From NCBI RefSeq assembly GCF_964204645.1, contig NC_134032.1, forward strand, positions 8,482,275 through 8,546,274: 64,000 nucleotides of DNA. The letters are read 5' to 3'. Shown piece after piece: positions 2 through 56,300 of this stretch (position 1 is its first letter; every line of letters begins with the position of its first letter). The stretch comes from Tubulanus polymorphus (lineage: Eukaryota; Animalia; Nemertea). A program made the position numbers and the translations under genes. Below the pieces are notes generated by a model that saw only the letters and a list, made by a program, of their open reading frames with translations, was not told the origin of the DNA and searched no databases.

Positions 2-3000
2 GATTACGGCGAGGATGCATCGGAATGCGGTCAGGACCTCGTCGACGGGTGTTTTAATTTCGCGTCGATGTCCGGGAGGAAGTTGTCGTCGATCGACGAG
101 TTGGAGGTCACGTACATGCAGCTACACGATCGTGACAATCTAATGAAAGATAAATTTCGCAATGTCGCTGCGTCTTCGTCGAACTCGTTTGGGAGTCATT
201 TGGACTCTGGCAGTCGTATAGACTCCGGATTTCACAGCGCGATATCCGAGCTGGACGACACCGGCGCCTCGTTGCCCCCGACCTCGAGTCGCGTACGAAA
301 AGACTCCCTGTGCAGTCCTGCTTATAAGACACAGCGGTTGGAGCCGGCGACTCCTAAGTCGACCCGAAAGACTCAGGCAGAAGTGTCGGTTCGCCTTTCG
401 TTCGATGATATTTGCTTGAAGTCGAATGATTCGGTGGTGTTGGCTGTGAAGAGCCCTGAGTCGATAGGAGAATGCTGTACAAAAAAGACCGTTCGCCGGT
501 CGGAGAAGACTCCAGCCGATGTGTCAGTTAGATTGTCATTCGATGAAGTCCCTCTCAGAAATGACTCGAACTATAAGTCGGGGGAGTCGACTATGAGCAG
601 CGGGGAAAAGTGCGGTCATAATATGGAACGAATTCCGATCGATGGTTGTTCTGATTCGAAAACATCGGAGCCATCGAAGTCGACTTCGTCAGTCAGCGCT
701 GTGAAAAAATGTTATCTGCGATACGCTTCTAAGTGCGGCGTATCGTTGGAGTCGACTTCGAAAGGTCGTCATCAGTTTGCGAAGACTCCCGGCGATGTAT
801 CGACGTGCAATTCATCGAACAGTTGTCATCCAAAGACTCCGGCCGATGTGGCGGTGCGTCTGTCGTTCGAGGACGTGTTGCGTATGCATTCCCCGCGCGA
901 CCCAGCGAATTTGATCGGACGCAAGATGGGCGTCGATCGGGTGGACGTGGTCGCCGAGCTCGACGTTCGCAACGTCGTCGGCTGCCTGCGCGCGATACTG
1001 GCTGGTCTCGACGGCGCCGATCTGTGTCGGATGGCGGCGGTCAGTCGTACGTGGCGGCGAGTTTGTCTGAACGATTCGACGGCGAATAAACGCCGCGTCG
1101 ATCATCTGAACGAGCTCAACGCGAAACACGCCGAACTCGGGAAGGTTAGCGTTTAATTCGAATGCATCGAAGTCGCGGGGCGAAACGCGGCGGACGAAAC
1201 AACGTCGAAATTTTGTTTCGCCCGATCAGGGTCCCCTGCGTTTCCTTTGCAAACTCCTAAAGGGATGATTCATTTATTACGTACGCATGAAATTTGAATT
1301 TTTCAACCCCCCTCTGAACGCAAAATCGGCCATTTAATCATATACATTAAGCATTACAGTACGCAATTGCACTGACCCCCTCCCCTAATCTGTACGTAAT
1401 AAATGAATGACCCCAAACCGATTATGAAATCATTGAAAACTTAGATTTCTTCTCTCCGCAGGAAAATTACGGCTCGTCGATGAAGAAAAAGCTGAATCGA
1501 TCTCCGTCTAAAACGGTGAAGGATTCGTTGAATCGTAAAGCGCTGGCGTATCGGATCATACAACCGACGGTCGATCCTTCAATGCCGGCCGGGATCGCCG
1601 GTTTACAGTCACCCACTAAAACATGCAGTCGTTATCAGTTATATATGCAGGTTAGTACCCTGTGGTCTTATAGTAAAGACTCCGCCTTACTACGGAGAGA
1701 GGAGCCTAGGAAGGCCTATCGATTTAAATTTTTTGGTTTACCTTTGTCAGCAGTATGAGGTTGGCATTGAGCCAATACATGTAAAATCGCGGTACGTTTT
1801 TTTATGTGAGCATATTTAGCCCACTTGGGACTTTAGTCCCAGCGGGCTATTGCGTTCACTTTTCGGCCGTCCGTAGACGGAATCCAGTTATTTTGGGAAG
1901 TTTTGAAGACGCTTCAAGGTAATGTCTTGATATTTGGTTTACACATGTATCTACCCTAGACACATCTTCAGCCCAAAAACTGGCCATGTCAGATTCAAGA
2001 TGGCCGACTGGCAGCCATTGTTGTTTGCCGAAATCAGCACTTTTTACACGTTTTTGAACTTTTTGAGGGAAATTTTGAAGATGCTTTGATCAATTACCTC
2101 GATCTTCTGTATATATTTGAATCCCCCCAGGGCCCACAAGCATTACAAAAATTGGGTCGGTCGCACTCAAGTAGGCCGTCCTATGACCTTTTTAGTGCCC
2201 AAAAATGTCAATTTTGGCCCGAATTCTGAGTACTGGTTCCTACTGGTTTGCCATTTCTCATTGAAATTGCTGATGGGTATTCTTTGGAAAGGGATATTTT
2301 ATACCTGAGACAGGTATTTTTGATCAGCCATTTGTGACGCAATTGGGGGTCATCTTGGTGTTTTCAGTACTCATTCACCGGTGGGAAAAAGATTTTCGAC
2401 ATTTTATTGATACCTAAGCATATTTTGTCACCACGATGAATTATGAAGTTGTAGCTTAACGTGTTCTATGATTGTGGTTAGCTTCAAGGTCATTGGTTTT
2501 GTATATGGCCACCAGGGGGCGTTGAATAATACTGTATCTTAGTATTTCTATATTATATTTGTACCCATGCATATTTAGTTGCCACAATCAATTGCAGTTG
2601 TAGCTCATGACATCGTCTATGATTGTGGTGAGGTTTAAGGACATTAGTTATTCTATATGGTCACCAGGGGGGTGTTGAATAGTAGAATAACTTAGTATTT
2701 CCTTATTATATTGGTACCTAGGCATATTTTGTTACCATGGTCAATTGCAAAGTTGTAATTCATGACATGTTCTATGATTGTGGTGAGTTTCAAGGTCATT
2801 GGGTTAACCACGTTTAGGAATTTAACGTTTAATTTCTTTTCACGTCTTGTAGGAGGCAAGTAAATTAAAAGTCGACGAAACATTGAAGAAATGTCCGCGG
2901 TGTTTGTGTCCGTCGTTGATGAAGCCGGCCGAAGAGCGCGGCTGCTGCACGCGTGACAGCTGTCGCTATGACTACTGCGTGCGTTGTTTGTGCACATACC

Positions 3001-4439: not shown

Positions 4440-5863
4440 GTTTTCTATTCTTAAAATTAGAGTTTTGTTTTTCGTATTCTTTTTTAAGAAAGTGAGGACC
4501 GTTCTGGAATACTGATTACTCGTCTAACAATGTCCACCCGGCAATCGTCTGATGCCATAACAGGGATCATAGTCTCCGTGACATTTGAGGACCTTTTTGG
4601 GCCTGATTCAAATTGTCTATCAATCAGGCCTTGGGAGACATGTCCTAGACTAAACTAGATAGACCGCTTAAAACGACCCTCGTTCTCCACATATCATTCT
4701 TACCAGGCTAGTGTACTGGGCCAAATACTACAATGCCAATGACCAGATCTGATGTAATGTAGGCCTCGGCAACAGATTATATGCAACCAAAGCTTTAAAA
4801 TGTATTGTGGCAAGGCAGATGCCATCGCCATGAACAGGATTCTAGAGGCCATTCCATGACTCAAAACCTTGAGTTGACCCATTCGCTTTCAAGGACTGTT
4901 ATGGACCCTCAGGGGCGCCAGAACCACTCCCACCCAAATTTGGGCAAAGATTTATTGATGTTTTGAAAACATTTTTGGATCTTGTGTGCATGACTTAAGT
5001 ATCGCGACAAGTGAGTGGATCACCGAATCTAAAAGCTGTCTGATTGGTCAGAGGCCCCAGCTTGAAAATCTATCCGTGGTAGGTCCAATGCTTGCATTGT
5101 TCCTGCACCCATTACCCTGCCATAAGTGATTTTGTTATTGTAACTGTTTGACAACTCATCTCTATCAGGGCAATTCTTTAAGGCGTGCTACTTTTTCAGC
5201 ACCAATAGTGCCGTATAATGCTACAGACAACCCATAGTCACGGAGTCTCCTCAAAAATGCTCTACCACTGAAATTAGTTGAATTGAATGTAAGTTTGACG
5301 ATATTGAGGCTGTAAGTGGATCGCAGAAGAATCGTGGAAAAATTCACTTCAAAACAAGCATTCAGGCAAAAAGAAATATCAGGGGATCCTGGGGATTTAT
5401 TTTTCCCGCAGTGAATTCTAACTTCTTTCGTGGGTGAAAATCCTTGTCCTTGCTGGTGATGAGTCATACCAGCAAGTTTTAGAAAAAGAACTGGCTCCCA
5501 CAATGGATATCTCATGAGATGATCGGGGAATTTGCGGATTCCCTAATCTACGAGCACCCTCGGCTCATTGACTGGATGAATTAAGTTGGTCGATTAGTCA
5601 TGGCTTAGACTTAAGACCAGTCTAAGACCAACTTAGTTATATAGCCACTCACAACTTACAACCAGTCTTAAGATTTTAGACCTCTCTTGGACTTATGTCA
5701 GGACTGTACAACTGAAAGTTAATACCGGTCTATAAAACATGCCCCACAAACACATCTGCATAAAACTCATTCTCCTGAATTGACCTGAGTTAAAACACAG
5801 ATATAGTAAAACAAAAATTCAGCTCAACAATTTACGTATTTTATTTGTAACTATAAAACAGTT

Positions 5864-8800
5864 TTATTCGACACTCATCGCGGCGGTTGAAGGTTGCGTG
5901 GAGACGTCGTCGCGACACTTCGATTTAACGAGTTCTCGTCTGATCTCGGGAGTGATTTGCTCGTGCGTGTGCGCGCGTAGTACCTCCAGTAACATGTCCT
6001 TCTGTTCGCTCGACACGTCCGTTTTATAACGCTGCACGAACGTCAGAAAACTCTGATGCCATAAAACGGGCAGTTCTCGTTTATCGTGAAGAAATCTGCG
6101 AAATAAAGAAGAAAAATAAAATTCAGCGACGAAACATTAGAATCAAAGACGCCTATTTAGAGGAGATTGCTTGAATCCCCCTATGACATCATCAAATAAC
6201 TGCTTATAGACACTTTCATGAAGGATGACTGCATCCATATGATGAGAGCTGCCAACTGTTTTTCTTGACGAGAAATACTGATTTGATTTGTTCGATGCAT
6301 ACGGAAATGATGTTGCCGAGGGTCTAACTGTTGATTACTGATTAATTGGACACATTTTCTTTCATGTTTCAATGAAATGTTACTGAAAAAATTCAATTTG
6401 TTACTGATAGCACTTTTCAGAGGTAGGCAGCCTTGTATGATTGGTAACATCATCCAATTACCCTTACACAGAACAAATTACTTCCCTGGTAATCTCCCAA
6501 TGACATCATCAAATTACCACCGGATACTTTAATCTCTGCCTGCCAATAAACCTTTTTGGCATTATCAAATTACATGTACTCCGGCAGACCCTTCGTTCCA
6601 GAAAAGATGGCTACCTCGGTCAAAACAAATGAAGGTATTCTGGATAAGTGCTCTGCAACGTCATCAGACCATCAATGGTTTACAAAAAATGGCTTTTATC
6701 TAGATGTTTAACGGAGATGAGGGGAGGAGAGGGTAGAGAGTAGGGGACGACGATGAGGGGGCGAACTTACTTGTAGAAGTGGTAAACGACGGCGTCGACC
6801 ACACGGAACGGTAACGCGTATTTTTTATCGAGCAGTACTCTCAGGAATATACTGTTTGCGCCGTTGTAGTCCATCTCGGCTACTTTCAAGATGGCCGCCG
6901 CTGAGTGCAACATCGGTATCGAACACTTGCCGAGCACGCTCGACAGAATAACCGCCTCTCGCAGCGTACACGTACCCGACTGAAATATACGAAATATTTG
7001 ACCGTTAAATCCGCTTATGACATATCGAGAATTGCTCCAAAAATATGGCTGGGAGTCCAGAAATGATCATACTACAGATACTTCAAGCAAAGATGGCGGG
7101 AACATGATAGAATTGATAAATAGATGGTGATTATCGAATTAACTCAACGTATATTTCCAGAAAGATGGCTCCCTCAATAAATTCCCTCTATGACATCATC
7201 TAACTAACACGATATATTCTAGGAAAGATGGCTGCATCCTTAAATCTCCCCCCCCCCCCCCCCCCGATGACATCATTGACACTTCATACACCTACCTCAC
7301 AGATCGGCAAGAGAATTCCTTTGAAAAATGCGGCAGGTTTGAAAAGCGCTTTCTTCAAGGCCTAAAAATAGCAATAACACATTGAGAAAATATTTTTGAT
7401 GTGCTTTATATTAGGTTCAGATTTGAGTGGAGTTTTATTCAGACTCCGTGGAGTCCGCCTAACAGTAGTAAATAGAAGCACCTATTGACTCTGCGAAGTC
7501 TTGGCCGCCGTACATACCATGTATAAATGAAAGTTGAGTCGCTTATATTCGACTATGTCGTCTCTGATTCGCGGTAGTAAAACCAGATTAAAAAACCGTT
7601 GCGCCATTTTGGCGTTGAGGTTTGATGTGAATATTCTGGTCGCCTGGTAGACCGCGGCGGCTGACCACGTGTCTGGTTCCGTAAGGTATAATATCTAAAA
7701 TAGAGAGGAATTTGTTTAGTAAGCGGCAGCCTGAAATCGGCACACCCTTCAGACATTCAGCACTGAAGTGCGAACAAACTGTTTTTGATAAGTAGTACAT
7801 TTTCTATCAATGGTGAATTCCTGAACACAAAAGTGACATGCGCGCGTTCAGTTTTTGAAAGTGTGCTGATAAAATGTCTAATGCCTGGTGTTTGTAGTTC
7901 ATTTCCGATTAGAAATTTCCTGGTATTTGTAGATCTGAACACCTGAGGTGAATGGTCAATTATTAGTTGAAATTGTCCCGACGAGAAATGCCTGCCTGGT
8001 GTTCGTAGTTCATTTTCAATTGAAGGAGACTCAGTTTAAGCGCTATTATACACATGTTAAGTCTGGATGATCACTATGAAAGAGTGCCGATTAAATGTCC
8101 GATGTTTGTAGTTCATTTTTAATTGAAAATGTCTGTATTGTCGGTATATTATTAATTTCGATTAAAAGATCATCGTGTTTACGTTGAAATGCTGGAAGTT
8201 AATTCAATCTTGAAAATTTAATTTGAGTCTTAACCCTTTCAGTGCGTCTACAGCGCAGTGCGGTGTACAAATCAGTGATGGATTTTGCTAGTACACTGCA
8301 CTGCGGTGTATCGATTTAATTAGTAATTACTAATTAGTTCTCTTGAAAGATGGCAGCACCTGTCAAACATAGTGAAATATTAATAACTAACGATACACCG
8401 CGCCAGGGTGTAGACGCTCTGAAGTGGTGTTATTCAACACACTAGGGTGGAATTTTTCAGAATTTTCAAATTATCTTCAGCACTATAGGGTATTAATTAG
8501 TCAGCACTGAAAGGGTTAATAACACTTCGTGAAACCAGCCATGCACCCGCCGTCAATGTAGTTCGTACCTGTTCCCAGTTGCGTAGGGCCGGTATTATTT
8601 TGAACGCTTTCGGTAGTTTTCCGCTGCGATATTTCTGTAATATCTGTTTGATGCTGCGGTAGATATTGACGACGCGGTCGTCCAACTGTTGCATTTGTAA
8701 ACTGTCCTGATCTAGAAATAAGAATTGAAATTCGATTAATCAAGGAGATATAGGAAATGAGATTCCTTAAATAGTAGAAAATGTGTTTTGTAAAAATACG

Positions 8801-23430: not shown

Positions 23431-24312
23431 CTAGATAGCAGCGCTCATCGCTGTTTGATCGTTGACGTTCAGATCGCGCAGGTGATCACTCATCGTCTCG
23501 ATCTCCTGTCGTTCTTGACGATCGGTCAACTGCAACTTCGCGACGTCCAAATCGTCCATCGACTTCGACCGATGAAACAGCGCGGTCAGCCCGCCGGGTT
23601 TCGACACGGCGGGCGACACCACCTGTGCGACGGACGACGCGGCAGCGCCACCGTTCAACGTCGTCTGCTCCTCGACCGATCGACTCAAACGCCCTCTAGG
23701 AAGTTCGTACGGTTTCTTTTTAGTCCACGACGAACGCTTGGCGCGACTGGAACGCGCCGCGCGCTGGCACCGGCGCCGGGGCGTGACCGTCACCCGCAAA
23801 TGCGGCGGCGACATCACCTGCATCGGTTTCGAGCTGTCGTCCATTTCGACGACGACGTCGCTGCGCGAATATTCCTGAGCCTTCGGATCCGGTACGACGG
23901 GGGTAAACCCGCAATCGGCGATGAACGATAATCTACCGAGTTCGCGATTCGAACCCGGCGGCGGCACAGGACTCGATGGAAATCGCACGTCGGTCGATAC
24001 CCCGATAACGTACTTCGGGTCCATTTGAACTATTTGAACGCCGGCGTCGACATCGTAAGACACCCCCGGCGAGTGAGGTAGAGCAGCAGATAAACCGGTC
24101 GCGGTGGTACTATTCATACGTATTTCTTTATCGGACTCGCTTTTGGCGCGGGCTCGGTCGGCGCGCTCGCGCAGGTATTGCCGTCGACTTTCCGTCACCG
24201 TGCTCAGCATGCCGAGTTCGTGTAACGCGTTGTCCAAATCGACGCCACCTGCTGGCGGCGACGCGCAACAATAACAGTTGTTTCGTCGGGATATCTCCAT
24301 CGCCGGGAACAT
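23431..24312 (-). CDS. MACIR: MACIR / C5orf30 (UNC119-binding protein) homologue, single coding exon
   Basis: Three collinear blocks match the recalled human protein: GVQIVQMDPKYVIGVST ~ GYQILHMDSNYLVGFTT; ARSSR-x10-PYELP ~ ARSSR-x10-PYEIP; RSKSMDDLDVAKL...EIETMSDHLRDLNV ~ HSKSLDYLNLDKM...DTEVLQYQLQHLTL. A splice acceptor (ctatttcag) at ~24337 implies a non-coding first exon. Confidence 0.8.
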   Translation of the reverse strand: MFPAMEISRRNNCYCCASPPAGGVDLDNALHELGMLSTVTESRRQYLRERADRARAKSESDKEIRMNSTTATGLSAALPHSPGVSYDVDAGVQIVQMDPKYVIGVSTDVRFPSSPVPPPGSNRELGRLSFIADCGFTPVVPDPKAQEYSRSDVVVEMDDSSKPMQVMSPPHLRVTVTPRRRCQRAARSSRAKRSSWTKKKPYELPRGRLSRSVEEQTTLNGGAAASSVAQVVSPAVSKPGGLTALFHRSKSMDDLDVAKLQLTDRQERQEIETMSDHLRDLNVNDQTAMSAAI

Positions 24313-25740: not shown

Positions 25741-27193
25741 GCTTCGGCCAGAATTCGAACGAAGTGTAAAGAAATTAATCAGAAATATCACCGGATTCCG
25801 GGTAAGACAGGCTTTAGTTACTTCCCCGATGAGTGAACTTATTAATTAGAACATATATAGACTTTTGTACGTTATTGAAATGTTTTGAATCGCTAAAAGT
25901 AACAAATAAAACGCTGGATTCGCCGAAATTTTCCTACAGCGCCATCTATCTGTCATAAGTGAAACTACTGTACCCCGAAGTCATGAATTAGAAGATATTT
26001 ACACAAATTTCTGTTTGTTAATGTTAGATTGAATAGAGAAATATGAATTTCTAAGATTGTTTGCTCTGGGTGTGCGGAAAAATGTTCCCGGAAAATGTCA
26101 TTCTTGCGTTGACTATTTTAGACCAGGTCCAGATTCAATGAATGATTTAAGATTGGTGATTGTTTATTTTGTAGGACCGCGACGAGAATTTTCAAATATG
26201 TCTGAATTTCGTGCTGTCGAATTTTAAATACCACAGATTTTTGGAAGTGGATTCGCATAAGGTGCGACGAAATCTTGATGGGTAAGTTGATGATTGTTCA
26301 CAGACTAGGATACACTGAACACTAACGACCCTCCCAACCTCAATTACTGGCTGGTAGGTCTGCAGTGGGCCTAAAAATACCTGAAACGGCATGCTGACTA
26401 AGAAAAATTTTGCCCAGCCTTATTTGAGTTGCCAAAAACATACAGGATGAAAGTGGTTTTTCGTAGTTAGGCCTAGTCCCATCGTGCTTCCGGAGAAAGT
26501 TCGGATTTTACTTTCCGGTGTCAGGCCTGAGGATGATCTAATGACCATGCGTAAAGTAAGAATTCTGCTAAAGTAAGAATTGTATGTTTAAGACTTCATC
26601 TGTCACAGATGAAGCAAAAAACCCTAATGAAATTAGTCATGATATAATTCCTTAGAGAAAATATTAAGTGTTGAATTAGTTATAGGCCTAGAATTATACA
26701 TAGTTTTTCCATTTGTATTGGTACATAGGCCTATACGTATTTTGTAACATAATTAATTGCAAAGTGGCAGCAAAACATTTCTTATGATTGTGGTCAGTTT
26801 TCAGGTCACAGCTTTCTGTATACATCCACTAGGGGGCGTTGTATTGTGTAATGATCAGGTATTTCCATATATAGGCCTAGAAATACCTAGGTATATTTCA
26901 CAGGGGCGGATATAAGGAGGGGAAGCAAATTTCCAGGGGCCCTAAAAATTTTTTTCTATTTCAGTAAAATTTTTCTTAAAACTAAACCATCCGTAATTGG
27001 GTGTTTCAAAAATATAGTTGTTGTTTTCTGGTGACTTACATGGGTGGGGCCTAGACCACTCACAGGATTTGCAAAGACTCCCAGGTACCACCAGAAAAGC
27101 CCAGATAGCTTTAAAATTGCATCAAATTTAGAAATGGGGTGCGAAGTGTGCGTATTGATTATTGAAATTGTTGAGCATTTGCCCAAGTGGGCA

Positions 27194-27230
<37 letters not shown>

Positions 27231-28826: not shown

Positions 28827-31800
28827 CCATATCCTATTTGTAGAAATATGGCAACATTTATGGGGGGACCTATTTTTCATTCTAGCTACTATATCTGGGT
28901 CCTACCCTACGTATCTGGAAGTTACTCGCCTAATGATTGTCGTCTTATGCTGTATATTTTTCACCTTAAAAAATGTACGTCATCATGATGAAAGTGAAAG
29001 GTTTTGCCAGCCAAAAATTTGTGAACAGCTAACGGCAAGTTACACGGATGAATAACCCTTTCGGGTCTTGCGCGAGAAGGTCGCTTTTTTTTTTCATCGA
29101 TTCGTTTGTAAATCTGTTTCGCAGATGAAGTTGACGAGTTCGATTGGAAGGCTTATCTACTGGAAGGTGAAGATACAACGCGTCTGATCTACCCCGATAC
29201 ATCTTCTGTAAGTTTCAGGGTTCGCACAGATCTAGGGAAAATCAGCAAACTCAGTGTCATTTTTTCCTGCAGGGAAAATCAGGGAAGATAATGACCAAAA
29301 AAGTCAGTGCAAACTGAATTTCAAGATGACTGTAAAATTAAAAGCACCGTCCCTATTATATTCCATTAACCCTTTCAGTGCGTCTACACCGCAGTGGGGT
29401 GTAAGAATCAGTGATGGATTTTGCTAGTACACCGCACTGCGGTGTATTGATTTAATTAGTAATAACTAATTATCTCTCTTGAAAGATGGCAGCACCTGTC
29501 AAACATAGTGAAATATCAGTAACTAACGATATACCGTGCCAGGTTGTAGACGCACTATAGTGCTATTCCCGTTATTCAACACACTAGGGTGGAATTTTTC
29601 AGAATTTTCAAATTATCTTCAGCACTATAGGGTATTAATTAGCCAGCGCTGAAAGGGTTAAAAGTATATAATTTCTGATGCTCATCACTTAATGCCCAAT
29701 GCACTCAATGCAGGGAAACGCAAAATCACGGAAACAAACATGTTTGACTATGTTTCTCATAAATGTGCACAATGCAGTGAAAAATGCTCAGAAACGTGTT
29801 TTTCTATTGCCTGATTCCGTGTTTACCCTTGTGTGCGGTTGTCTTAACAAACGCCACGTGCATGATATCTGTAGTGCACATTGGATTCTTGACCCTCGTA
29901 TCTGGTAAAGAATCAGGGCTCGGTTTTTTAGGCTGGTTTTAACTTTAACGCAGGGGCTAACTCAATTTACGTATTCAATTGAGTTAACCCCCGCGTTAAA
30001 GATAATACCAGCCTATAAGACCAGCCCCGTATGTCGTCGGTAATGTAATCCTTGAGGTCGATGTTATGGAAACATGTCCTCGGTGGTGCTTGATGTTTGA
30101 TAGCTGCATCAGTCAAGAATGTTTGACAGATTTAAGAATTTCTCTCGAGAATGATTTTATTTACGCTCTCAGGACGAGGAAGATTGGAGGCTCGATGACG
30201 ACGACAACGATGACGCTGCGGCCGTGGTATCCACGGCGATTCCGTTCGACTCGGGAGTTCGAGTCGAAACCGATCGCGACGATGATGACGATGATGAGGA
30301 AGAGGAGATGACGTTAACGGGGGCGGAGTTTACGACTAAATCGCATTACGATTGGCTCACGAGAAACGTCGTCGTTCAATACTGGAAATCGGACAATGCG
30401 CTTTCGATTTCGAGTCCTCGTGTTAACGGAATTTCCGATATCTGGTAAAAAAAAAGTGTTGATACCTTTCAGCTACCTAAGCCTGCTTTCTTACAAATTT
30501 TTTGGCATGAATTTCAATTTAAACCTCGGTTTCTTAGAAATTAAATGTTCATGAATTCGATGGCAAAAGTTTACGCGAAAATCGTTCTTGAATTAGAAAA
30601 TTTGAATTGATAATTTCAAGTAAAAACTAATCTAAATTGAAAATAAATTGAAATTAAAGTCGACCTTTTTTCGAAATTTTGACGTTTTTGTCTTCAAATT
30701 TTTAGGGAGAAATATTTGTTTGATTCGAATCCGCTTTACGTCCTCGCAAAGCGCCACCTACTGACAGAGACGCAAATTATACGCGAAACGCTCTGGTAAG
30801 CGCATAGCTACTCTCATTCCAGTGCTAATGTATGGGCATTTTCATATCGTCCAATAAAATTTGAATTTTATCTTCTTTTTGCTTCTTGAGCTTCCATTAG
30901 ACTTGTATTGTTGTACTCCCTCTCCCTCTCCCTCTCCCTCTCCCTCTCCCTCTCCCTCTCCCTCTCCCTCTCCCTCTCCCTCTCCCTCTCCCTCTCCCTC
31001 TCCCTCTCGTTATTTCATGTACCCTTCAAGATAACGTCAGGAGTAGGGCGAAAATTCAGAAAGTTGTCTCAAAAAAATATTTTAGCTATTGGCCTTAGAT
31101 CCAAAATTCAATTGGAACTAAAACCTTGTAACTTCGGAGTTTGAGCCTGAGCCAAAGAAATGTTGTTGCCTTATTGACTTATTGTTTCTGCATTTCTTGA
31201 AAACAAATATCTTTTAGGATGTTATTTGGTGCCGGTGATAGAGGTCTGTTCGTTTATGATTTTACGGACAGCGGCAATGAATTAGGGGGTAGATTCACAG
31301 TATCCGACGAACTGAAAGTGTCGCATCTCACCACGGTAAATATACCCGCGCTCTGTAGAAAACTTTTCGATTGGTAAGGTTTGATGATCCTGAAATACCT
31401 GGCTCCGGTATGCTAAATATCTTCTGTTTCAAGTCGGACTTAAATGCAACCCGTATGTTCACTTTAACTGCCAAATATTGAATGTATACACCCTTCAAGA
31501 AAAGCTGTCTCGCCCTTCCAGAAGATATGTCTTGTGTCCAAAAATTTCACGATGACGCCATCAAATTCCTCCTTATTGAGATCTTTCCCGAAAACATGGC
31601 TACATCCTTAAATTCGTGTGACATCGATCAAATTATGCCTAAAGCCTCACAGAAAAGATGGCTGGAAACGCAAATCGCTCGATACCATTCATCAAATTGC
31701 TCTTTATTGAGAGACCCTTATGGAAAAGATGGTTTCATGTATAAATCCTCTATGACATCATCTAATGGTCCCTTTGAACTCTTCCATAAAAAAGTAATCC

Positions 31801-49094: not shown

Positions 49095-51619
49095 TATTTT
49101 ATGGTCTCCCTCCATACACTACGGAAAGGTTGGAGTTTAAATGAATTCCTAATCCTAATGTCCTATCTCTTCTCTTTTCTCCTCTGTTCGATCTGGCCCT
49201 TATTTTTTCCTTCTTCTCCCTCACCGGCCGTGTCCTAGTAAGGCCAATTATTATCGGTTATTGAATAATGACTCAGCTGTGAATGTACACACACACACAA
49301 GCGCGCACACGCCCCTCGACCTGAAGCGTACACACAGAAGATAATAATACGCATATACTGTTGCATTATGGGAGACGTCTGCTCTCTCTCTGGTGACAGA
49401 CGGACGAGCGTATAGTGTGTAATGGCCGCCGACGCTGTCACCGATAACAACACAACAGACTGTGCACATTTCACCTACGTTCGAATTGTCAACGGATTAA
49501 CGATTGTCCCGATGATATCTTTAATAATCGTACTGAATATTCGATAAAGCTACGTTTGAACATCGCGGTCGGGATTTATAGAGATCGGCGGTTATTAAAC
49601 ATTTATATCGGAGTGTACTAAGATAGATAGATAGATATGTTTGTTTTTTCTTAGTTTGATTCTGGTGAGTGCTTTATTTTATGTGATTGTCCGGAGGTTG
49701 TGAAAATGTTGTCTTGGCAAAAAATGGGGGGGGGGGTGGTGGACTGCTTAAATGCCAGGTTGGATGCGCTCCTGGAAAGAGAACTGATTCTAACTCCCCA
49801 CGATAACTTGAATCTCGGTGCTTGTACATAGGGTGGCCACTTACCTGCAAATCAGGGCATTTATGCGAAGGTCAGGGAAAATTCCTTTACAAAAGTCGGG
49901 GAATTTTGTTTGAAAAAAAGAGGTTAAACTCAGGGAAAGTCGTGGAAATTTGTTAAGATCGCTAGACTGTGCGTAAAATAAAACAGTTTCTTTCTATGTC
50001 ACATGTATTTGAATGTGTTAATTGATCGGATTCTTAGCAGATCCAGTCAGGGATAACAACTGGGGGGGGGGCATGTTGGGTATGTCGGGGGGGGGGGCGG
50101 CAGGTCAAAAAAGGTGACCATCCTGTAAACTTTCACGTATTTGAAATCTTCACTTTTTATAGACAATGAAGGCGTTTTAATTCTTTGTTTCCCATTCCCA
50201 GCCATCTAACCGAACCTACGTATTATCAATATCGCCGAAAATCTGAATTTTTTTCGTTATCGTGTTTCGAGCAAATAGAACGCGCAAATAAAATTCCTAG
50301 CCAGCCAGCATATATAATCAAAGCATATGAACTAAAGTAAATACGCGAATACGGGACAGATAAAGATTACATGAATTGACTTTCGTGAAATGGCTTTTTT
50401 GTGGTCGGACTTTGATGCGGAAAAAAGCCGTGTTTAGAGGACGGGACGATGTTTGCCTATAACGTATGTGAAAGCAACATTGAACACCGTGAAACACGCT
50501 GAACCTAGACAGGAAATAACTGACATTCCGAAGCGTCTACATACGATATTATTGCTATCCGTGTCGATAATATCCTGAATGGTTTGCCGTATGTTTCGAT
50601 AATATAGTTTTATATATCCGAGTATACTAGCGTTTTTTTTTTTTTTAACGGAGGAAAAAATTATTCGACTGTATAGATCTGGGCAGAGACAGGGGCAGTA
50701 GACTAAGGCGTGTGGTCAGTGTTCTACGTATGTTGGAACGGCAGCATTCATTGTGTTATACCGGTAATGTATGACATCGTAGCTTCTGAAGTATCAAGGC
50801 TTTCGATCCCCCCAAAAATACAGAACCAAAAATACAGAAATTTAAGCTTAATTTTGGCGTTTTTGTATCTTTTATATCTGATATTTTATAGGTACATTTT
50901 AGGTAATTTTTTAGGGGTGGCTGTAATATAAGGAGAATCCCAAAGATAACAAAAAAATGTCATTCCAAAAATGTTTCCTCTTTAGCTAGTATATAGTCTA
51001 TTTGACATTTCAACTATATTGTTATTCTAATAGTCATCTTCAACAATACTGAGTTACAACAGTGATTATGAAATATGAATAAAAGCGGTGGCTGATTTTC
51101 GGAGGGGTTGATACTGCAATTTGCGCCCGGAGTGATATCCGTGCGTCGATGATGTACATTAGACTCTGCTCGAGTCGAGTCTTTTTAGAATTATTGGAAA
51201 TGTGTGCGATTTTAAAGTGGTGTCTGTGGGTTGGGTGATACAATAAGTCAAATTTATCTGAGTAGAGACGTGATATCTGAGTTGGATGGTACTGCGCGGG
51301 TAGATCCGAATTGGATCGTACAGTAGGGCCTAATAGACTCTCTGAAATCAGATCTGGACGGTACACTTATAGACAACTCCCAACTTGGATCTTTTGACCT
51401 AAGGTATCGCGATGATTGATATGGTGTGTAGATGGTACAACAGACTCAATGCTGATCTTTTGACTTCGAATTGATATCTGAGTTGGGTTTGGTTGTAGAG
51501 TATGTACTTCCCCGAAATTTAAGGTCTTATCTTTTGTATATTCAAATCTATAGCCGAACTCATGTTCCTGACATCAGTTGCGACTGTATTTCTGGGCTAG
51601 ACAACATTATGCCTGATTC

Positions 51620-53335
51620 TCGCGAATTAAAAGTGAACCTGGTTCGAAATTTTGCCTGATTCATGTGAGTTAAAGGTGAGCCCATTTTTTTGCCTGATTC
51701 ATGTGAGTTAAAGGTGAGCCCATTTTTTTGCCTGATTGGTGTGAGTTAAAGGTGAACCCAGTTAGAAATTTTGCCTGATTCATGCGAGTTAAAGGTGAAC
51801 CCAGTAAGAAATTTTGCCTGATTCATGCGAGTTAAAGGTGAACCCAGTTAGTAATTTTGCCTGATTCACGCGATGTTTAAGATGAACCCAGTTTTTAGCC
51901 CACTTGGGACTTAAGTCCCAGCGGGCTATTGCGTTCACTTTTCGTCCGTCGTCCGTCCGTTCGTACGTCCGTCCGTCCGTCCGTCCGTAGACGGAATCCA
52001 GTTATTTTGGGAAGTTTTGAAGATGCTTCAAGGTAACGTCTTGATATTTGGGTTACACATGTATCTACCCTAGACACATCTTCAGCCCAAAAACTGGCCC
52101 TGTCAGAATCAAGATGGCCGACTGGCAGCCATTGTTGTTCGCCAAAATCAGCACTTTTTACACATTTTTGAAGTTTTTGAGGGAAATTTTGAAGACGCTT
52201 TGATCAATTACCTTGATCTTTCGGATATATGTGAATCCCCCAGGGCCCATCAACATAACAAAAATTGGGTCGGTCGGACTCAAGATGGCCGTCCTATGAC
52301 CTTTTTAGTGCCCAAAAATGTTAATTTTGGCCCGAATTCTGAGTCCTGTAGCTTCCTACTGGTTTGCCATTTCTCATTACAATTTGTGATGGGTGTTCTT
52401 TGGAAAGGGATATTTTATACCTGAGACAGGTATTTTTCATCAGCCAATTATGACGCAATTGGCGGCCATCTTGGTGTCACCAGTACTCATTCGTAAGTGG
52501 GAAAAAGTTTTTCCACATTATATTGATACCTAAGCGTATTTTGCTACCACAATCAATTAGAAAGTTGTAGCTCATAACGTGTTCTATGATTGTGGTGAGT
52601 TTCAAGGTAATTGGAATTCGTATATGGCCACCAGGGGGCGTTGAATAATACAATATCTTAGCATTTCTTTATTATATTCGTACCTATGAATATTTTGTAA
52701 CCACAATCAATTGGAAAGTTGTAGCTCATGACATCATATATGATTGTTGCGAGTTTTAAGGACATAAGTTTTTCTATATGGTCACCAGGGGGCGTTGAAT
52801 AGTAGAATAACTTAGTATTTCCTTATTATATTGGTACCTAGGCATATTTTGTTACCATGATCAATTGCAAAGTTGTGGTTCATGACATGTTCTATGATTG
52901 TGGTGAGTTTCGAGGTCATTGGGTTTTGAATATGGTCACCAGGGGGCGTTGAATAGTAGAATGACTTAGTATTTCCATATTAAATTGGTAACGAGGCATA
53001 TTTTGTTATCACAATCAATTACAAAATCGTAGCTGCTGACATGTTCTATGATTGTGGTGAGTTTTAAGGTCATTGGTTTTTGTAAATGGTCACCAGGGGG
53101 CTTTGAATATTGAAATTGTTAGATTGTTGAGCATTTGAAACCACTTCCCAAGTGGGCATGGTGTCCCTGGACCCCTAGTTTGTCTGATTCGTGCGAGTTA
53201 AAGGTGAACCCAGTAAGAAATTTTGCCTGATTCACGCGAGTTAAAGGTGAACCCGGTTCAAAATTTTCCCAGATTCACGCGATGTTAAAGGTGAACCCAG
53301 TTTTGAAATTCTGCTTGATTCATACGAGTTAAAAA
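51620..53335. repeat. ~40-46-bp minisatellite (GCCTGATTCATGCGAGTTAAAGGTGAACCCAG..) split by a HINE insertion
   Basis: About 6 units at 51620-51892 and about 4 units at 53181-53335. Confidence 0.85.
51893..53181 (+). mobile_element. Full-length HINE/DINE-type (Helentron-associated) non-autonomous element
   Basis: 5' subTIR GCCCACTTGGGA with adjacent hairpin; (GTCC)n at ~51944-51987; four 154-bp repeats; 3' subTIR TCCCAAGTGGGC (53146-53157); short hairpin and CTAGTTT end. Inserted in a T-run with no TSD. Confidence 0.85.
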
Positions 53336-56300
53336 ATGAACGCGGTCGCCACTCGAGGCGTCTGTCTCACTTCCTTCGTCGTACGGGCGTGTGTGTGTGT
53401 GTGTTCAAACATACGTAGAACCACTATTCAATACGGTTTAAATAGGAATTGTATTCGGCAGAAATTTTCTAGGTTTGCCTATAAAATATTCATAACCGGT
53501 CTGCTCGGTACTGTATGCTCTCCTAGTCTGATGATATATAAACCTGTCTGAAAATACTTATTCGGAAGAAAAAAAATCTACATGCTTTAACTATCAGTGA
53601 ATTCATTGAGCGCTTATGTTCTTCTCGGAGAAAAAACAAAGTCTTTTTTACTGAAATTTCAGAAGTCAGTTTGATTTTATGATGAGGCAAATACTGCTCC
53701 TGAAATTTAACATTTCGGCGTGAATGCTTTATTGATGTTGCAAAAGCCGTTACAATAATGTTTATATGCATTGATACCTAGAAGTATTTAAGGGGTTCTG
53801 CATTGGAGTCCATGTGCACTACCTCATCAATATTGGCGTTTCGAAAATAATAATTACGAATTTCGGCATTTATTTTGTTATTAAACATACTTCATGACTC
53901 TAAATTTCATTTGGATAAATTTTGATAATTAGTTTTTGAGGGGAATGTGTACTACATCATCAATATATCGGGGCTAGACTGGTTGCTAGTAAATTCAATT
54001 CAATAATCGATATATTCAAATCCAAATTAAATTTATTGATCCGAGATGGTTCATATATCGTGAATCGAGCCTCTTCCATCTCTGCTGCAGAGATAAGCCT
54101 GTTGATCATCCAGCATCATCCATGGCTGCAGCTGTACATATAGCCTGTCATCATGTCATCATCTCCCCGGCGAGAATTGATGCCTGACGGGGCGATTTAT
54201 AGCTTCTGCTCGCTAGTTATCGTCAGGGTCAAGGTCGCTGGGACATTCACCACTGTTTTTACGTAGTTTATGTATGTATAGCATCGAGAGTTTTGGCCGT
54301 CAGTTTTTACGGGCTGTGTGGCTGCGGTAATTACCAATGTTGTTGCTTGGCAACGTGTTAATTGTGCTTGATGTCGGTAGGGTTGACTTAAATATATATA
54401 TATTTACGCGGTTTCAACGCTTGGGTGTCGTATGTGAATTTCGAATGAACCGGGTCTTTTTAAAAAGAGAAAGCTAAGGCGAAAATTAATTGATAAACGT
54501 TTTGCCAAACATTAAGCGATAAGGATAAGCCTCCTAATCGGCCGGGTCACTTTTGTAAACTGCGATCAAATTTGTTTATCTGTTTATTTCTATAACTGCC
54601 AGGTCTGTTATTGTTAGCTTGATCATGATCTTTTGATTTATAAGAAGTAATGCACAGTGTAGAGTTGATTTTTGAGCTCAACAGAAATGATAAACGAGGC
54701 ATCAATTTTTAGCCTAGCTTTGGAATTTTTTTTGACGGTGTGATAGATAGGATATTTCTGAAAACCTAGAGAAAAAATCGGGGAAAAACTCACGGAGTTT
54801 GACAAATTTTGCAAAAAGAAAAACCCTGAAAACCACATGGAATTAAGATATGTGTTCATAAAAAATGAATGAATTCTAACATTTCGACCTAGATCGTTCT
54901 CTGATTCATGGAATTTTTTGTCTTATATAACATATGTAGAAATCAGGGAAAACTCAGGGAGTTTGTAAATCGGCGTAAAGTTGCCAGCAGCCACCCTGTG
55001 ATATAGCACGGGTATGATATGGTATTAATATTCGCTTTGCTACGGTTATTTTGAATTTGAATATACATGTAAATCGGCAATTCAATTGAATTAACTGGCA
55101 ATGCACCTAGCCCCTACATCGACGAAGCATAGGACATGTTCACTCAGGGAATATGCTAATTGCCATTGAAATTCATTATTAAAAACCGATGAAAATTCAT
55201 GGAATAGAAAATACGAGTCATGAATTTTATTTAATTACGAAATAATCGCTGATGTAACACAAAATTGATGACGAAACAGTGTACATCGACTAACACGGTA
55301 CCCCTTTGAATTATGACATTAACCCTTTTAGTGCGGCGTATAAATCGATGATGGACATTGCTAATACACCGCATCACGGTGTATTGATATAATCAATTAG
55401 TTTTCACAGTGAAATATTTGTAACTTACTATACACCGTACAGTGGTGTAGATGCACCAAAGGGTTACGTGCCAGTTAGCCAACGCATTGCGTTGGAATTT
55501 TAGAGAAAAAAAAAATTCAAATTATCTCCAGCACTTCGGTTATCGATTAGCGCTGTAAAGGGTTAAGTTATCTGTATATGAAGTACTGATTTATACTAAA
55601 AACAATCCTCAGATTCATCCTATCATTCTTTTATTATAGATGTGCTAATATTTGTCTTCATTATATTTTTCAGTGTGGATTATTTGTCAATTACGAGGGA
55701 TATAGAATCAAATAGGATTCAGTAATAAAAAGAGGTAAGACATAGATATTTGTTTGTTGTGATAGATTGATCCGGGGCCCATCCAGTGGCCAATTTTAAA
55801 GGACTTGTCACAGCATAAAAGGGCCGATGTCCGAAGAAGCAATGTTGTATGTGTACTCCACACTGAGGGGCATTCTTGAATTGAAATGTGCTAGTTGTCT
55901 TCGTTCAAAAAATGAAAAAGGGCACCCAAAAACATTAGAAGGACCTGTACAAGTCTCACAATTGCCCTGGATGCTGAAGTCTCCCGGCCTTGCACCTTAA
56001 GAACACACTCATGGCCCGAGTCCGGACCCAGTACCAACCATCACCACGGCCAGAGTTCGAAGTCTGAAAATGTTTTATTAAATAAGATTTCGATCTTGTG
56101 GGCTCAATAGCTCTATTCATCCTGCAGTTTGTTATAAACACAGGGGGCAGGGGGCTGAAAGCAGCTCAGCTAACCTGCCCGTTTCTGCGTTGTTGCTGAA
56201 ATTGCGGTTTGATACCAGTTGTGCACGCGTGTGTGTATGTGTGTGTAACCTGTTGACACACTTCACAATGAAAAAGTCAACCAAAACGCAATAAGAGTTG

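Follow-up and report, generated by a model that had tools for sequence, protein, structure and literature searches.

We found that a recently amplified rolling-circle element in the nemertean Tubulanus polymorphus has, in each unit of its internal tandem array, a sequence that resembles the core of the binding site for CTCF. The element was recognized in a stretch of 64,000 nucleotides (hereafter the window; NCBI RefSeq assembly GCF_964204645.1, contig NC_134032.1, positions 8,482,275 to 8,546,274 of the forward strand), and the positions given below are those of the window unless a contig is named. It is a HINE, that is, a non-autonomous Helentron. An initial annotation, made from the letters of the sequence, had proposed that the array is a mobile insulator or loop-anchor cassette. 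Our analysis leads to a different emphasis. We think it probable that this family passively spreads potential CTCF sites, and that most of its copies are passengers and not insulators maintained by the host.

The motif is repeated in phase and in one orientation. TGG(C/T)CACCAGGGGGC was found on the plus strand at 52625, 52779, 52933 and 53087, with a spacing of exactly 154 bp, as had been reported. There were six matches to TGGYCACCAGGGGGC in the window, compared to 0.05 expected from dinucleotide-preserving shuffles, and none of 100 shuffles reached six. We also recovered the more distant occurrences that had been described: an older copy of the element has TGGYCACCAGGGGGC exactly at 2506 and with one mismatch at 2658, and CCACTAGGGGGCG is present at 26826, inside a single old and diverged repeat unit (nhmmer, 26736-26870). 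The four unit types of the central array differ by ~18%, and the motif is present in the consensus of all four. Unit 1 matches the core consensus CCASYAGRKGGCR fully (CCACCAGGGGGCG), and units 2-4 match it with T at the first C; the comparison with the vertebrate CTCF position matrix was an informal one. Unit 4 of this copy has a private G to T change at 53102 that gives GGGGGCTTTG, and ~83% of the reads from the family have G there. A YY1-like word, CAAGATGGCCG, that had been noticed in the 5' module does occur there three times, at 52110 and 52281 on the plus strand and at 52463 on the minus strand.

The assignment of the element to the Helentron type was borne out. All of the structural hallmarks of a HINE are present (subterminal repeats, a 5' inverted repeat, a GTCC-type microsatellite, a central array, a 3' palindrome, and insertion at a T-run), in the layout defined for DINE-1-like non-autonomous Helentrons (Thomas et al. 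2014, PMC4067079) and described in oyster (PMC7492417). The ends of the element are sharp. The alignments of 29 further genomic copies, with identities of 94-98%, stop exactly at 51892-53181. Whole-genome read depth rises from ~6x in the flanks to ~10,000x on the element, with steps exactly at 51892 and 53180/53181, and thousands of non-consensus read ends at both boundaries lead into unrelated AT-rich sequence.

Near the ends, GCCCACTTGGGA (51898-51909) and TCCCAAGTGGGC (53146-53157) are exact reverse complements of each other, and both are conserved in other copies. The 5' subterminal repeat and the inverted repeat next to it fold as a DNA hairpin (-9.9 kcal/mol, z -3.4). The 3' palindrome (53141-53155) has a 6-bp stem and a 3-nt loop and lies 26 bp before the end of the element; its fold by itself was no better than those of shuffles. 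Of the 26 copies with a visible 5' end, most begin with a T-run ahead of AGCCCAC, and CTAGTT is the 3' terminus in 27 of 29 copies. The flanks of the insertion sites are AT-rich and mutually unrelated, and the target is T-rich or TT without a target-site duplication, as in other HINEs. The copy at 1864-2456 has the same left module at 88-92% identity, and the length of the microsatellite differs among copies, as indicated by read joints. No open reading frame (ORF) of at least 150 amino acids overlaps 51892-53181, and an Rfam search of the element gave no family match.

The proposal that the element had spread and been amplified was correct. We searched a 268-Mb assembly of 77 contigs (the large contigs are numbered at least to C12) and obtained 2,712 initial candidate copies. 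A 24-mer from the right module, GGCATGGTGTCCCTGGACCCCTAG, had 2,299 matches with at most two mismatches, compared to 0 for the control. That is, there are ~2,300 copies in the assembly, and reads were piled ~1,700-fold on the element, a depth that implies ~1,700 copies at 90% identity or more. Many copies of the family are 98-99% identical. Intact 13-mer cores numbered 4,531 genome-wide, consisting of 1,269 occurrences of CCACCAGGGGGCG (control, 2) and 3,262 of TCACCAGGGGGCG (control, 0).

The length of the array is polymorphic within the family. Among 40 independently anchored copies the modal array had four units, and arrays of one to five units occur. Copies without an array account for ~1% of reads, with ~100 reads that skip 52422-53114, and 817 reads join 52908 back to 52754, indicating copies with one additional 154-bp unit. 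Elements were found in both orientations without bias (1,107 vs 1,192). On the 32-Mb contig C1, none of the matches listed was in the first 6.3 Mb, and matches were dense at 9-19 Mb.

The host encodes a clear orthologue of CTCF, colinear with zinc fingers 1-10 of the human protein, and the objection that this worm might lack CTCF does not apply. The gene was located with a degenerate two-finger-helix pattern that served as a lead only; it had a single match, on contig C3. The gene is at ~3.4294-3.4317 Mb of this contig (locus L033, G000:C3:3424000-3433999). In the coordinates of the locus, an ORF at 5414-6787 encodes a long acidic, Q-rich N-terminal part and zinc fingers 1-5, and an exon at ~7272-7700 encodes zinc fingers 6-10. 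A piece of the ORF of 110 amino acids is colinear with residues 267-376 of human CTCF (164.8 bits), and 143 amino acids from the next exon are colinear with residues 376-520 (141 bits), the sole match in PDB at E<=1e-55. In fingers 4-6 the recognition helices agree fully or almost fully with those of human CTCF. There are some differences in the helices of finger 3 (TIASLTNH) and finger 7 (QSNSLKAH). It is plausible that the host CTCF binds the HINE core.

CTCF-type motifs are also abundant outside of the element, where they are 20- to 90-fold enriched over a reversed-pattern control. CCASYAGRKGGCRS, whose count is free of HINE copies because the HINE core continues with T, was found 1,245 times, compared to 16 for the reversed control. 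The T-first, non-element form TCASYAGRKGGCRS was found 837 times, compared to 41 (~20-fold), and a form in which T stands for K and which cannot derive from the HINE, 1,081 times, compared to 12. Many of these words are singletons with an extended GGCGCTA(G) tail, and others are in at least three further repeated sequences. The non-element cores are often towards contig ends and are spread along the arms. They are sometimes in small same-strand clusters with members 60-170 bp apart (for example, C9:446924-447295, C9:1366793-1367046, C10:1926517-1926886 and C1:31231836-31232214). Thus, the HINE is not alone in having motifs that are clustered and oriented. Among the further repeated sequences that carry the core, ATATCCACCAGATGGCGAGTGT, TATCCCACCAGATGGCGTG.. 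and ATGACCACTAGATGGCGCTTAA recur at many places on contigs C1 and C2 and may be additional repeat families or multi-copy promoters bearing the motif. A variant, TCACCAGGGGGCGC, recurs at spacings of 1,127 and 2,079 bp. Two non-element cores are in the window itself, both on the minus strand: CCAGCAGGTGGCG at 24243-24255 and TCAGTAGGTGGCG at 30752-30764. The former lies within an ORF at 23431-24312 (minus strand), ~60 bp from its 5' end; this ORF is the only one in the window with an exact match in a public protein collection.

Within the repeat unit, the block that contains the motif is well conserved between lineages. We compared 56 unit clusters (92% threshold), a sample chosen partly by BLAST seeds that possibly lie in conserved blocks. 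Because of this possible bias, we used a second sample of 40 elements, all on contig C1 and with 134 units in total, that were anchored on the right module alone and were chosen without regard to the repeat. Among the 56 clusters, the best 15-column windows were all within CACCAGGGGGCGTTGAATA (0.93, compared to 0.80 overall), and the motif region ranked first. In the anchored sample, the motif window ranked second of 95 among the least diverged, and the frequency of shared (subfamily) variants in the motif was a quarter of that in the rest of the unit (0.6% vs 2.4%). The old relative at 26736-27195, whose closest matches in the genome are only 70-77% identical, retains CCACTAGGGGGCG. The preservation of the block between unit types and subfamilies points to conservation in a few propagating lineages.

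In contrast, the motif decays at nearly the rate of its flanks once a copy has been inserted. In the anchored sample, private mutations were present at 3.5% in the 15-mer motif and at 4.1% outside of it, a ratio of 0.86 (p=0.25), and the ratio for a second conserved block of the unit was the same. The initial annotation had asked whether the motif decays like the flanking repeat sequence, and the answer is divided: the motif is the best-conserved part of the unit between lineages, and decay after insertion is close to that of the flanks. The CpG in the core had been lost at 23% of otherwise intact sites (5,885 intact 11-mers, compared to 4,531 with the CpG), about the rate at clean comparator CpGs of the unit. 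The G run had lost one base in 2.7-6.2% of reads.

Two apparent signs of selection on this CpG were considered and rejected. In the 40 anchored copies there were 17 changes of CG to CA and only 1 of CG to TG, an asymmetry that would fit the tolerance of CTCF for R at this position. In the element-rich zone of a genome-wide listing there were ~8 CA to 6 TG, the pooled count was 33:10, and sequence context could explain the asymmetry. The motif CpG also seemed to decay more slowly than comparators. This effect was driven by three comparator columns that represent ancestral subfamily differences, and clean comparators decayed at the same rate.

We propose that the family works as follows. In the family consensus, every 154-bp unit includes a match to the core of the bilaterian CTCF site (YCACCAGGGGGCG). 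Because the motif is part of the consensus unit, each transposition would deposit three to five potential CTCF sites in the same orientation, and because the DNA-reading fingers of the host CTCF match those of human CTCF, we infer that these sites are probably bindable. The motif would be retained in the lineages that propagate, single insertions would decay near the neutral rate, and inserted copies would accumulate in the central parts of chromosomes. It is this near-neutral decay, together with the central accumulation, that would make most copies passengers.

Several observations weigh against this proposal, either as it concerns passengers or as it concerns CTCF. When the 40 anchored copies were pooled with the 29 best-scoring copies, the private-mutation ratio was 0.78 (p=0.03-0.06), and it was 0.73 for the 19-mer (p=0.004). 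Some of the copies may therefore be under purifying selection, weak at most. The confidence interval from the anchored sample admits a reduction of mutation in the motif of up to about one-third, and the samples used to measure conservation come mostly from one chromosome and from best-scoring copies. The second block, TTCTATGATTGTGGTGAG, has no resemblance to a CTCF site and is nearly as conserved as the motif (0.91). Among the consensuses of the four unit types, the longest invariant run is 18 columns, which is borderline on its own (permutation p=0.05). Lastly, three of the four units (2-4) have T in place of the first C of the canonical core.

Why the block is kept is a separate matter. 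Source copies could profit from being bound by CTCF, the block could act in replication of the element or in homogenization of the array, or its retention could be due to chance. We are cautious here because the block exceeds the CTCF core, because a second box exists, and because the units of oyster HINEs have two boxes. A further possibility, which we consider less likely than not, is that the host CTCF binds the arrays and that the motif is retained because it profits the lineage of the element, perhaps through source copies that stay unmethylated and accessible.

It is also conceivable, and in our view rather doubtful, that the likeness to CTCF is coincidental, and that CACCAGGGGGCGTTGAATA and the second block serve the element or its array without binding CTCF in vivo. 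They might be a site for Helentron replication or transposition, a hot spot for unequal exchange that homogenizes the repeat, or a site for some other DNA-binding protein. The best-conserved window does reach in the 3' direction into GTTGAATA, outside of the informative CTCF core, and the TGG-Y at its 5' side is less conserved. The presence of an unrelated block that is nearly as conserved fits with such a role, as do the two conserved boxes in oyster HINE units (PMC7492417), one of which (GGCCACAATGGGGG) is a poor CTCF site. Conservation that is seen between lineages and is absent after insertion would be expected for a function of the element itself. In addition, a genome has many transposon families, and at the background rates seen in the controls a single chance match to a consensus is not negligible. 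However, 12-13 consecutive positions of the core are matched in all four diverged unit types, and the only change in the old relative (C to T) is at a degenerate position of the CTCF site. The fingers of the host CTCF that read this core are conserved, and the central repeats of HINEs are wholly different between families, which argues against a general role in transposition.

The least probable of these explanations, and one that we regard as quite unlikely, is that the arrays are working insulator or loop-anchor cassettes, occupied by CTCF and selected by the host at many sites. It draws on the perfect or near-perfect core in each unit, the three to five sites in one orientation, the conserved reading fingers of the host CTCF, the strong genome-wide enrichment of this class of motif, the rank of the motif block as the most conserved part of the unit, the pooled private-mutation ratios of 0.73-0.78, and the finding that the CTCF motif is the commonest motif in annelid open chromatin (PMC7854359). 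Against it, motif and flanks decay alike in the unbiased sample, nearly a quarter of the sites that are otherwise intact no longer have the CpG (a loss that points to methylation in the germline and not to protection), and 3-6% of reads have deletions in the G run. The distribution of copies along contig C1 is as for tolerated transposons, whereas non-element motifs are spread along the arms, and the orientation of the elements is unbiased. The spacing of 154 bp, which had been called near-nucleosomal, is an ordinary period for the central repeats of HINEs (PMC7492417) and does not indicate a design on the scale of the nucleosome. Passive spread of potential sites, mostly in passenger copies, thus remains the reading that we prefer.

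Table 1. Coordinates of the element, its motifs and parts, its relatives in the window, and the surrounding minisatellite (TRF, Tandem Repeats Finder)
Feature	Position	Strand	Basis
Complete HINE copy (non-autonomous Helentron), ~1,290 bp	51892..53181	+	genomic copy alignments and read-depth steps
5' subterminal inverted repeat GCCCACTTGGGA(C), spacer, adjoining inverted repeat GTCCCAGCGGGC; T-run 51892-51896 upstream	51898..51926	+	read from sequence, kept in other copies
Left-module (CGTC/GTCC)n microsatellite	51943..51988	+	TRF
Left-module body with three YY1-like CAAGATGGCCG words	51989..52505	+	word search
Central tandem repeat, 3.9 units x 154 bp	52506..53109	+	TRF, 82% matches
CTCF-type motif, unit 1, TGGCCACCAGGGGGC then GTTG	52625..52639	+	pattern search
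CTCF-type motif, unit 2, TGGTCACCAGGGGGC	52779..52793	+	pattern search
CTCF-type motif, unit 3, TGGTCACCAGGGGGC	52933..52947	+	pattern search
CTCF-type motif, unit 4, next G mutated to T at 53102	53087..53101	+	pattern search, reads
Right module: palindrome CCACTT-CCC-AAGTGG (53141-53155), TCCCAAGTGGGC (53146-53157), terminus CTAG+TT(T)	53110..53181	+	sequence, copies
Second, older family copy, 3'-truncated within third unit; motifs at 2506 and 2658	1815..2805	+	pattern search, nhmmer
Old diverged relative: one repeat unit with CCACTAGGGGGCGTTG and right-module remnant (~27160-27195)	26736..27195	+	nhmmer
43-bp low-copy minisatellite, left half	51606..51891	.	TRF; read depth ~6-15x
43-bp minisatellite, right half; unit resumes at 53182	53182..53333	.	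TRF and self-comparison

The element was inserted at 51892 into a T-run of a 43-bp minisatellite (~10 units) and split this array in two (Table 1). Downstream of the split minisatellite is a (GT)n run at ~53385-53400. Read depth is ~130-450x at 53684-53851 and 53936-54000, compared to ~6x in neighboring unique sequence, indicating another moderately repeated element.

We also looked for an autonomous partner of the family. There were 58 matches to Helitron_like_N in the genome (for example, L105, C4:18788439-18791978), in ORFs of up to 2,009 amino acids, and the occurrence of Helitron-type Rep domains in long open frames suggests recently active autonomous rolling-circle elements. The one Rep that we read through has the motif IEWQKRGLSHAH (RGLSHAH), which is neither of the clean signatures. 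The subterminal repeats of the HINE family were absent from all four of the Helitron-type Rep loci examined. A scan of metagenome contigs for relatives in other species, made with the second conserved block, gave 60 loci, none of which had the repeat unit by nhmmer; these are chance matches. Among the sequencing runs listed as containing the element's sequence, none is recorded as RNA, and one, from a second organism, has ~9% of the words of the element.

If CTCF binds the arrays and the element lineage benefits, this would be the first known wave of transposon-spread CTCF sites outside of mammals. Binding would also make it the first such wave that was carried by a rolling-circle element, and the first in the form of ready-made oriented clusters. 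Sites in the element exceed strictly canonical non-element sites (from the count of the 14-mer CCASYAGRKGGCRS) by ~3- to 4-fold in a compact 268-Mb genome. The pre-vertebrate origin of CTCF-based folding, and its remodeling by transposons, are debated, and data from spiralians and other marine invertebrates are scarce (PMC10658182, PMC10658181). This genome provides a natural experiment, with a very young burst of ~2,300 insertions, each with three to five oriented consensus cores and with arrays of variable length, in a host that has CTCF-type motifs of its own and whose CTCF gene is intact. If the arrays turn out to be unbound, they would illustrate that a repeat can match a consensus without the match being a sign of function.

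Our findings combine two kinds of observation that are each known, namely HINEs with satellite-like repeats and transposon-borne CTCF motifs. The oyster Cg_HINEs carry Cg170-type satellite-like repeats with a central period of 165-181 bp (Vojvoda Zeljko et al. 2020, PMC7492417). The element described here shares with them the 12-bp subterminal inverted repeats, the adjoining inverted repeat at the 5' end, a GTCC-type microsatellite (GTCY/GTCC in oyster), a short array of 150-180-bp units of variable length, and a 3' palindrome ~25 bp from the end. It also has in common with them insertion at T-rich or TT sites without duplication and a copy number in the thousands. Unlike Cg170, the repeat unit is unrelated in sequence, save for a possibly shared GGCCAC..GGGGG box that was seen in a comparison of short words. 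GGCCACAATGGGGG(G)n occurs ~1,270 times in the oyster Cg170-type units (supplement of PMC7492417). It resembles the 5' half of the block and its G run, and the AG that is invariant in the CTCF core is missing from it. The oyster HINEs and the present family may thus have a conserved box that goes back to a common origin. We searched the literature for CTCF together with Helentron, Helitron or molluscan terms and came across no description of CTCF motifs in elements of this type.

Internal tandem repeats of a rolling-circle transposon have been connected to insulation before. The minisatellites of a C. elegans Helitron were proposed to act as chromatin barriers (bioRxiv 10.64898/2026.08.08.743475). 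In both cases internal tandem repeats have been proposed as insulators, possibly to the benefit of the element. The mechanism in C. elegans, a species without CTCF, is one of DNA mechanics (10-bp periodicity), whereas the HINE would act through a protein-binding motif.

In terms of the spread of a motif, the closest analogue is the rodent SINE B2, one of the mammalian retrotransposons that spread CTCF motifs (Schmidt et al. 2012, PMC3368268; PMC9067402; PMC12487818). Both have a CTCF-type motif in the consensus of the family and have scattered it over the genome in thousands of copies. In contrast to SINE B2, the carrier here is a rolling-circle DNA element and not a retrotransposon, and the host is a marine invertebrate. 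SINE B2 brings one site per copy, whereas the HINE brings a tandem array of three to five potential sites in the same orientation. In mammals, most transposon-borne CTCF sites are masked or unused and a subset is bound (PMC3368268, PMC9067402, PMC12487818).

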